64,000 bases of DNA from Calcarisporiella thermophila CBS 279.70 (lineage: Eukaryota > Fungi > Calcarisporiellomycota): assembly GCF_041956535.1 (NCBI RefSeq), contig NW_027192191.1:1003443-1067442 (forward strand), given 5' to 3'. The position numbers and the translations under genes were made by a program. Positions 12,913-16,324 of the stretch are shown in pieces; position 1 is the first letter of the stretch, and the number at the start of each line of letters is the position of its first letter. Under the pieces are notes generated by a model. That model was not told the origin of the DNA, made no database searches, and saw nothing but the letters and a program-made list of their open reading frames with translations.

Positions 12913-14374
12913 ATGGTGAATGAAAATTCTTTGGAATCGAAATTGCACTATATGCGAAATTGTCAAAAGCAAGAAAGCACAATTCACCATGAAGAAGGGG
13001 TGAGTAGCACATTACGATTTGTATAATCTCTCAGTTTGCATGAGCATGAGATTGCAAGTACCCATATATTAGTGGGAGGGGGGTTAAACTTGGTTTTTAG
13101 TGAGAATAAGTCTTGAGAGAAGGAGGTGAATTTTAGTATTCTAATCCAGTATATCTAAACTTTTTTTCGGCCTCTGAATATTAGAAACTGTTTATCGGGG
13201 GTTTGGACTGGAGCTCCACAGATGGTATTAGCGAAAAAGCAAATATTTATATCAGTTGAACAGATAATAAGATTTCGTCTGGTTAATAGAGTCGCTGAGG
13301 AACTACTTTTCAAAGTTTGGAGAGGTAAAAGAAGCACGCGTAATGAAGTGGTCGACAGGAGTATCGCGTGGGTTCGGGTTCGTAGTATTTACGGACCCGT
13401 CCTCGGTTGATGAGGTACTGAAACACGGGCACAATCACATATTGGATGGGAAAGCGGTGAGGACTTTTCTTCAAGTTCCCTCTAGTCTGGCTAATGAATA
13501 ATAACTTTGCATCTTTGGGGGGGGGGGGGGGCAGATTGATCCAAAAAGAGCCATCCCTCGCGAGGAACAAGATAAAATAGAGAAAGTATTTATTGGCGGA
13601 ATTCCCCCCGAGATAACTGATGAGCTCTTTCGCAAATATTTCGCGCGATTTGGAAAAGTACACGACGCAACACTTATGCTGGATCGTGATGGGAAACCGC
13701 GTGGGTTTGGGTTTGTTACCTTTGAAGCGGATGATGGTCCAGAGAGGCTCCTACATAGAAAGGACTTGACAATAAAGGGGAAGCCGGTATGTAGGAAACC
13801 CACCTCACCGCTTCTTTTTCCTGATCCCGGGGCAACTATTAAATAATGTGAAATATTCATTCATCCGGCCTTTTAATTCGGTTAGATTGAGATCAAGAGG
13901 GCCTTTCCTAAGCCGCGCCAGCAGCAGCACCCCCATGTTACAAGCACCCTCAGTCCTTCCTCGGCCACTGCCTGCCCTAATCCTCCGACTAAAGCCCAAG
14001 AGATGAAATTCACCTCCTCCTCTTATCCTCCCGCAATACTGCCACTTCATACGCATCCATATCCGCCCTATCCTTCCGGGACTAACAATTACTCTCTGCA
14101 GCAACAGCAATTGCCGCACCAATCTCCACCCATGATACAGCCAGTGCCCTCGGTACAGCAGCAAAATCCATGGCCCTTGGTCGCCCCTCTACCCGGATTC
14201 TGTGCACCTATTGCATTGCCAGTTGATTGTTCGCAATTCTACGGATTGGGCTATGTAGCTGGTTTTGGAGCTCAAACAGGTAGCAGAGAACAACATGTGC
14301 AGCATGTTAGCACAGCACCAGCCGGCTTCGGGATATTGAACCCAGTTCCAAACTATAATCAGTATGTTGAATAG
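12913..14374 (+). CDS. Tandem-RRM RNA-binding protein, Hrp1/Musashi family, with a Pro/Gln-rich C-terminus
   Basis: EEG|KLFIGGLDW (RNP2), SRGFGFVVF (RNP1), linker IDPKRAIPREEQDK, KVFIGGI, KPRGFGFVTF, IEIKRA. Four GT-AG introns. Confidence 0.88.
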
Positions 14375-14642
14375 GTGAAAAAGAGCAAATATCTGGAGTG
14401 AATTGCTTTTTTCATGCTATTTCATGTATAATTTTGTATATTCAATTCACTATCTTATTTTATATTTCTTGTTGTTCCTTTTTTTATATATAGGAGCGCA
14501 TAAGAAATTGAATATTCCCTTCAGCTACCATTTTTTGCTAAATACAGTCCATTGTAAAATTATAAAGAAATTTACAAACCCAGGAGGATAATGGATGTCT
14601 ACTACTGTACAAGAAGATATCAAACTCCGCATCCCTAAAATA

Positions 14643-16324
14643 TTACTGGACCGGTACTCTTCGATACCAAAAGTGCTGTTTGATTTCCCATACCTGACCG
14701 ACCAAGCATCAAGAGACGTGTTTTAATATCACACCAGTGTAATTTGAAAATGTGAAATGGTTTTACCGTGAATCTATCCAAAGGGTCTGCCCTTAGCATC
14801 CCATACCGAATGAGATCAATTGCTTGAATCGAGGCCTGGGGATTGCAAAATTGTATATGATTTACCTATACCAGAATGCGGGTTAGAAGCCTTGAAAGAC
14901 GAGTGAAAATGCAAATCCACTTGCTTGCGCTAATCGGTTGAGATAGCTGACTAAATTTGGGTAAAATGGATATCGTCCTTGAAGCATAGTGTAAAGACAT
15001 ACACCTAGAGACCAAACGTCGGCCGCGTAGCCATCGTATTCCCGAAACTATTAAAAAGAAAAAAAAAAGAGTGAAAGGATGGGTAAGCACAAGTCTAAAT
15101 CATCGGGAAAATTCTATTGTACCAGTAAAATTTCTGGTGCAACATATTCAGGGGATCTAGAAATAAAATAAATATTTTAAATTGACTCGCAACACTTTGT
15201 GGAAAACAATGAAGCCAGTTACCCGCAGACACCATTGCACAACTCGTCATCGAGTTGATACGTAGCAAAGCCAAAATCTCCCAACTTAACGTTGAAATCC
15301 TTGTCCACTAAAACGTTTTCTAGTTTGATATCTCTATGACTTTTTAGGAAAGAATCGCCTCTTAGTTAAGCTTGGCTTCCGTTGTAGCTGATGTATATTA
15401 AAGTCACCATATATTGTGCATATGAATGTACTCGACTGCTGACAGCAGCTGGCGAAATATCCTCTATACGAGATTCTCTCCCATTTGACCCATCTGGGCA
15501 AGCATCTTGAATATTTCGCCACCCTCATAGTAGTCCATCACAATATTCCTAGAGTTGGAACATTAGCTTGATACAAGAATGATAGCTAAAGCTCTGGTGA
15601 ATGTATTTACGTGCTGAATAGCATTCTATGAACGGCCACCACTTTTACAATATTATCATGTTGCTGCAGAGTACGCACCATCGCCACTTGTCGTTCGAGG
15701 TCGTTGCGTTTTGCCGCAGTGAGGGTGAAAATCGATTTTATTGCGAACACTCTCCCAGCAGTGGCGGGATGAGTGGAGAGATATACAGTACCTAGAACAC
15801 AAGATATTTATAGAAAGTAAGGATTTTTTTTCTCTTCGCATGCATAATGCTAGTGATTGAAGTTATTGTAGCTCACCCTCACTCCCTTTCCCAACTTGGC
15901 GTACCACCGAAAAGTTTGCTACTTTTCCTCTCCAAGTAAACAGAAAGGTTCTCAAAATTTTGCGGATGAATCGCTTTCCACGCAGCAGTGAACGCGCAAC
16001 TTGATAGGCAAATGTCCATGGAGGAGATCTATTTCCCATTTGTGGGGGAGAGGAGTAAGGACGCATGAAAGGAGATTTTGCATTTGCGGACACACTGCAA
16101 TAGGGGCTTGATGTCACCAAGTTGAAATGGCTATTTCTTGAGAGAACACCTGTCCTGTTTTGTTCTATTAGAAGAGTCACTGTTATGAATGTGAAGTTGG
16201 GTGGGGGAAGGGGAATGGTGAGAGGAGTTCGAGATTTTGCAGGTGGCCAAAGTAAAGTATATTAACAGTCAGCTCTTTTTGAAATTGGGGAGTGACTGCC
16301 AGATATAGGTTTCAATTGTTCCAT
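14643..16324 (-). CDS. CAMKL (SNF1/MARK-related) Ser/Thr kinase interrupted by one in-frame TAG at 15464-15466. The start is either 16324 (via an intron) or 16066
   Basis: Spliced translation: [99 protein letters not shown]…EIKQHFW. All introns are GT-AG. Confidence 0.85.

Follow-up and report, generated by a model that had tools for sequence, protein, structure and literature searches.

A single in-frame TAG interrupts a CAMKL-type kinase gene, VTP21DRAFT_429, on the minus strand of the 64,000-nucleotide stretch of Calcarisporiella thermophila CBS 279.70 DNA analysed here (the window). The gene is otherwise undamaged, and both of its paralogs in the same genome carry TGG at the corresponding codon. 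The interruption most likely represents an ordinary recent knock-out of one of three sister kinases, and we regard it as probable that VTP21DRAFT_429 is a recently inactivated allele, be it an incipient unitary pseudogene or a strain-private null. We infer that the TAG terminates translation and arose recently. An earlier note, made from the letters of the window, had placed the gene in a non-ascomycete, early-diverging fungus, and the source is indeed a member of the phylum Calcarisporiellomycota. What is added here is the TGG ancestry of the stop, to which both same-genome paralogs point.

The kinase gene and its internal stop codon

VTP21DRAFT_429 comprises eight exons at positions 14643-16066 of the window, with the first ATG at 16066, the annotated ATG at 16039 and a terminal TAA at 14645-14643. 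Exon 1 (15877-16066) encodes a short N-terminus with a family-specific basic motif, W..YQ.AR..LRGKRF, followed by the start of the G-loop (GKGSEG), and is 72% identical to its counterpart in the paralog on contig C13. Exon 2 (15611-15791) covers beta2 to beta5, including the VAIK-type Lys (FAIK), and an alphaC helix in which Gln replaces the conserved Glu. The hinge (DYYEGGEIF), alphaD, the TAG and alphaE lie in exon 3 (15408-15548). Exon 4 (15223-15339) carries the catalytic loop and an activation segment that has no T-loop Thr, and exon 5 (15123-15156) encodes SPEYVAPE. Exon 6 (14925-15047 at its longest) encodes DVWSLG and alphaF, exon 7 (14767-14865) alphaG to alphaH with the conserved Arg (DPLDRFT), and exon 8 (14643-14693) an HFWY motif and a C-terminus (...RRVPVQ-stop) like that of the sister gene (...RRKPVQ-stop). 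In an exon-by-exon Pfam scan, PF00069 was matched on exon 4 (E 1.6e-8) and on exon 6. At the DNA level the gene is single-copy in the 28.2-Mb, 116-contig assembly. Single exons or annotated paralog proteins were used as search queries, and codon counts were made exon by exon and then summed.

The positions and phases of the introns are the same as those in both paralogs. This agrees with the intron structure proposed earlier, in which every intron was GT-AG, except that the donor of exon 6 may belong to a GC-AG intron. Two options for this donor were judged against the GYQYLLEN and GYEDLLTN of the paralogs. If exon 6 ends at 14952, the donor is a weak GTCAGC (14951) and nine residues homologous to the start of alphaG in the paralogs are lost. 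If it ends at 14925, 27 nt further on, the donor is the GC-AG type CAA|GCAAGT (14924) and these nine alphaG-start codons are retained. The candidate GC-AG intron region is at 14919-14951 on the minus strand.

The in-frame TAG is at 15464-15466 on the minus strand (C1:1018906-1018908, with the mutated base at C1:1018907). This is codon 143 in the annotated numbering, at the start of helix alphaE, and its minus-strand context is AATCTCGTA-TAG-AGGATATTT. That this is a lone stop in an otherwise complete kinase had been claimed before, and our rebuilt eight-exon gene bears this out with no further stop and no frameshift. The public NCBI annotation of VTP21DRAFT_429 is a 142-aa product ending at the TAG. 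If the gene is a plain nonsense allele, the consequence is one of annotation, in that VTP21DRAFT_429 would be better described as a disabled paralog than as a 142-aa protein.

At the column of the stop, the codon is TAG in the window gene and TGG in the paralogs on C13 and C35, whose surrounding residues are ENLV-W-HIFRQL and EPLA-W-VVFHQL. The presence of TGG (Trp) in both paralogs shows that the stop arose as TGG>TAG, with the second base of the codon changed from G to A. We then compared this column with 118 related CAMK/CAMKL kinases. Trp was found in none of the 118; the residues were Ala in 49, Arg in 34, Ser in 17, Lys in 10, Gln in three and Leu in one. In an alignment with BRSK2, the column again falls at the start of helix alphaE and the BRSK2 residue is Arg. 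Trp at this column is specific to the three-gene family, and the previously drawn comparison with kinases such as NEKs, said to have Trp at this alphaE position, is not borne out.

Removal of the TAG by splicing was considered and rejected. Every in-frame GT/GC..AG pair that would excise it depends on a poor donor and does so at a cost of 2-37 residues. The pairs of at least 36 nt each cut into the hinge, alphaD or alphaE, and six shorter pairs (6-51 nt) are too short for credible introns. Since the splices that remove the TAG damage the hinge, alphaD or alphaE, a working kinase cannot splice it out, as had been argued from the window alone.

Past the TAG, about 190 codons and five introns are undamaged, although the same would be expected of a gene that is edited or read through. 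Among the usual signs of a pseudogene, the gene has a disabling lesion and one possibly non-canonical donor. TGG>TAG is among the commonest nonsense transitions, and transitions in Trp codons should account for a considerable part of nonsense mutations overall.

A family of three kinases and its history

The genome holds three members of this kinase family. Besides VTP21DRAFT_429 these are VTP21DRAFT_2028 on C13 (P0005, 374 aa, ~75% identity in exon 2) and VTP21DRAFT_7982 on C35 at ~64-65 kb (P0003, 342 aa, ~53% identity). The family resembles the CAMKL kinases. The sister protein P0005 aligns with BRSK2 over the whole kinase domain (E 2.4e-55), and its E-values range from 1e-50 to 1e-55 across BRSK2, MARK (MARK1-4), AMPK alpha and Snf1. 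Like these kinases and SIK3, the window gene holds the Lys, HRD, Asn and DFG elements. It keeps the FAIK Lys, HRDxKxxN, DFG, APE, DxWSxG and the alphaH-alphaI Arg (DPLDR), and all strongly conserved kinase columns past the stop are retained. Unlike the CAMKL kinases, the family has no UBA, KA1 or regulatory tails and has an N-terminal basic motif of its own, and it has Trp at the stop column where its relatives mostly carry Ala, Arg, Ser or Lys.

A further difference from the CAMKL kinases concerns catalysis. All three family members have Gln in place of the alphaC Glu and Gly at the T-loop position, so that none has the T-loop Thr, and the complete CAMKL catalytic set, which includes the alphaC Glu and the activating T-loop Thr, is not found in the family. 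The Gln and the missing Thr of the window gene had been noted before as a caveat, possibly reflecting relaxed selection. Both are present, but because the two intact paralogs share them they are traits of the family rather than signs of decay of the window copy. Judged by its motifs, the whole three-gene family looks catalytically atypical. In P0003, HRDLNLVN replaces HRDxKxxN in addition to the alphaC Glu>Gln change, and VTP21DRAFT_7982 is probably a pseudokinase.

Among the collections searched, the family appears to be confined to the C. thermophila genome. Exon 2 was run with phmmer against 1.84e9 representatives, and the only hits were the C35 paralog, two spurious repeat proteins and the truncated product of the gene itself, a 142-aa protein that matches exons 1-3 exactly as far as the TAG. 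With P0003 as the query of a word search, no protein but the two paralogs exceeded 40% identity. The next best matches, in 5.8e9 and 1.84e9 proteins, were generic CAMK/CAMKL kinases at 37-40% identity. The protein clusters of the three kinases have one member each, and the phylum has one genome on record. Exact look-ups of the kinase sequences gave no match and the protein collections held no transcript-derived protein, while a metagenome scan for the locus with N at the variable base gave no hits.

The gene lies in an old duplication. A convergent RRM gene (~13343 onward, plus strand) sits tail-to-tail with the kinase, and a kinase and RRM pair is also found on C13 (291000-300900; 1776-4905 therein), with the RRM exon 67% identical. 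As an RRM paralog adjoins the C13 kinase, the pair arose by segmental duplication. The duplicated stretch in the window is 13343-16066, and the upstream Zn2Cys6 transcription factor gene is outside it. Between the paralogs, synonymous sites are saturated and pN is ~0.2, indicating long-term purifying selection. This saturation also means that a comparison of dN/dS before and after the stop is uninformative.

Unique residue changes were counted in the window gene and in P0005, with P0003 as the outgroup. The window gene has 24 and P0005 has 10 (binomial p = 0.024). Upstream of the stop the counts are 8 and 3, and downstream 16 and 7, respectively. The codon-position spectra are similar (24/20/45 in the window gene vs 24/12/41 in P0005), and the lineage-specific changes are largely conservative (such as L>V, I>V and F>Y), suggesting that any relaxation was mild. 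On these counts, the acceleration of the window copy appears mild and not limited to the region behind the stop. A mild acceleration together with the lack of a second lesion suggests that the stop is young relative to the history of the gene, or that it is not neutral. The lack of a second lesion together with the retention of all invariant kinase residues likewise argues for a young stop.

The following history would account for these observations. The gene is one of three Calcarisporiella-specific, small, CAMKL-like (BRSK/MARK/AMPK-related) kinases, born with its RRM neighbour in an old segmental duplication and then held under purifying selection through most of its history. Later, a single G>A transition converted the family-conserved TGG at the start of alphaE to TAG. 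Translation would halt after 142 residues, leaving an N-lobe fragment that does not include the catalytic loop. With five introns downstream of the stop, the mRNA would also be a likely target of nonsense-mediated decay. Since the family is lineage-specific and redundant, the loss of one copy is unsurprising. Elsewhere in the genome, an aldo-keto reductase and NRPS modules have comparable lesions. The gene resembles young unitary pseudogenes and nonsense alleles of fungal multigene families in that its single nonsense change is a transition and hits a paralog that is redundant and lineage-specific. It differs from them in the absence of a second lesion, which implies that the change is very recent or not neutral.

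Possible sequencing error or tolerance of the stop

If the TAG were a base-call or assembly error, the genome would really read TGG and the kinase would be ordinary and intact. The absence of any other defect in the gene fits such an error, and there is a single draft assembly. That assembly (JAZGQU000000000) was built from 454 data with SOAPdenovo and has a BUSCO completeness of 97.4% (PMC11393059, Supplementary Data 1), a figure that speaks against an error. In a 454 consensus, TGG could become TAG only if an A were called in excess and the GG under-called at the same time. The errors typical of 454 data are homopolymer-length indels, not G>A substitutions in a non-homopolymer context. The context of the stop is CGTATAGAGG and not a homopolymer, which makes a base-call error unlikely, and we give this explanation very little weight.

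The stop could also be real and tolerated, either because the 142-aa N-lobe fragment is useful, for example in regulating the paralogs, or because some full-length protein is made through an amber suppressor or by readthrough at a low level. Upstream of the stop the family motif is retained and the changes are chiefly conservative, and the family already looks catalytically atypical in its alphaC Gln (3/3 members) and, in VTP21DRAFT_7982, in its HRDLNLVN. However, the acceleration in rate is about equal before and after the stop, unlike the pattern of selection on an N-terminal fragment alone. Readthrough of the TAG is itself unlikely. A purine at +4 favours termination in general, and the codon after the stop begins with A (UAG-A); to our knowledge, UAG-AGG-AUA fits no known readthrough motif. 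A pattern scan for an amber suppressor tRNA (CUA anticodon with a canonical T-loop; limited sensitivity) gave 12 matches with seven distinct sequences. ARAGORN was run on six loci, representing every distinct sequence but one lone locus, and reported tRNA-Arg, tRNA-Val or no tRNA, and no CUA anticodon. The scan thus led only to tRNA-Arg genes, tRNA-Val genes and non-tRNA sites. Overall, a tolerated stop of either kind is highly improbable.

Possible A-to-I editing and other stop codons in the genome

The remaining alternative is that ADAT-type A-to-I editing turns the UAG into UGG (Trp) in some developmental or stress state and that the cell produces the complete kinase in that state alone. 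The proposed parallel is with the premature-stop-correcting genes of the PUK1 type in Fusarium. The kinase shares with these targets an in-frame UAG inside the kinase domain, with the rest of the gene perfectly intact, an origin of the UAG from TGG by G>A, such that the edited UGG would restore the ancestral residue, and membership of a family that looks catalytically atypical. TGG is the main origin of the edited TAGs of Fusarium (PMC10776026). With both paralogs showing TGG to be ancestral, the editing-compatible signature is stronger than the earlier note knew. The differences are that editing of the C. thermophila kinase is only hypothetical, the gene being known from DNA, that the host is one of the Calcarisporiellomycota, far from the Pezizomycotina lineages for which editing is documented, and that C. 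thermophila has no sign of an Ame1 duplication.

The phylogenetic distribution of editing argues against this explanation. A-to-I editing of mRNA is documented only in Sordariomycetes and Pezizomycetes (PMC11087585, PMC11156358), and the claims of editing in basidiomycetes are regarded as artefacts (PMC11156358). It was in Sordariomycetes that Ame1 became able to bind Tad3 and thereby license mRNA editing, an interaction reported as an innovation of that class and linked to duplication of Ame1; editing in Pezizomycetes probably has a separate origin, and Ame1 was duplicated in both lineages (PMC11087585). The genome of C. thermophila was examined for the corresponding genes, as the earlier note had proposed for Tad2, Tad3 and Ame1. 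At least five deaminase-fold (CDA-fold) loci are present, together with one clear DUF726 (Ame1-family) gene at C18:301383-302647. A second DUF726 candidate, on C20, scored 23.1 bits, just over the cut-off, so the search yielded deaminase-fold and Ame1-family genes but no clear second DUF726 copy. Deaminase-fold genes are present in every eukaryote. We know of no description of a sexual stage for C. thermophila.

The sequence around the target A was also considered. The earlier note had set the context beside the known preference for U at -1 and purines at +1 and +3, but the U at -1 and the G at +1 are dictated by the TAG codon itself. The free positions are -2 (A), +2 (A) and +3 (G), of which only the G at +3 agrees with that preference. 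A hairpin with a 4-bp stem and a 5-nt loop, GUAUA, is predicted here, and the target A is the final base of the loop. This local hairpin is not significant (z -1.4), as 19 of 200 shuffled sequences fold as well. A larger structure is formed by a 13-bp inverted repeat that encloses the TAG (15450-15521, minus strand; arms 15509-15521 and 15450-15462), with 12 Watson-Crick pairs and one G-U. Its 72-nt fold has a z of -4.5, and none of 200 shuffles was as good. The arms come from the codons for GGEIF and RIFRQ, and on visual comparison the paralogs lack this complementarity. ADAT-type editing prefers small hairpin loops over long duplexes (PMC11156358).

A search for other lone TAGs at Trp positions had been suggested in the earlier note. 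In the sample of lone stops checked here two were confirmed, so that at least three genes of the genome, including the kinase, have a conserved TGG changed to TAG. The second is in an NRPS condensation domain (C25:374049-374051), where seven of eight paralogs carry Trp and where the HHxxxDG motif is also damaged (HHSVMDRVS). The third is in an aldo-keto reductase (C19:602398-602400), an intronless and otherwise intact gene with all catalytic motifs, in which the TAG is at the conserved Trp of PAQ..LSWGIQRG (PAQVLIS-W-GIQRG) and a paralog on C15 has W at the same column. The existence of these two genes counts in favour of editing. A hairpin common to the three sites was not found, and neither the NRPS nor the aldo-keto reductase site has a local one.

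The stops in other NRPS modules point to ordinary mutation. Modules on C6 have a TGA at an Arg column and a TAA at a Tyr/His column, and a module on C2 has a TGA at a Ser/Thr/Tyr column. The NRPS modules with in-exon stops also have damaged HHxxxDG motifs. The in-exon stops of the condensation-domain paralogs stem from CGA (Arg), TAY (Tyr), TCA (Ser) and TGG (Trp) codons, suggesting an ordinary mutational spectrum, and the in-exon stops checked are of all three kinds. Measured against the expected supply of nonsense changes from Trp codons, three TGG>TAG genes are no excess, and the lone stops show no surplus of TAG. The modules that bear them appear from these features to be ordinary decaying modules, and their mutational origin weighs against editing as the explanation of the stop in the kinase. 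Most of the stops within matches to the NRPS condensation domain were set aside, as they are intron donors (G|GTAAG) and not real lesions. No stops were found in the N-terminal laccase domain (PF07732), and a genome scan with PF00069 for kinase-internal stops was uninformative because in-frame introns were read through.

On this evidence, there is only a slim chance that the kinase UAG is edited to UGG. That C. thermophila restores UAG to UGG in the kinase mRNA, and perhaps in those of the NRPS and the aldo-keto reductase too, in a condition-specific manner seems very doubtful. If it did, this would be stop-correcting editing far outside Ascomycota and would represent an independent origin of ADAT-type mRNA editing. 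The gene has value as a cheap test case for stop-correcting editing outside the filamentous ascomycetes. The three TGG>TAG codons have one further feature in common, noted post hoc and with n = 3, in that each is preceded by A.
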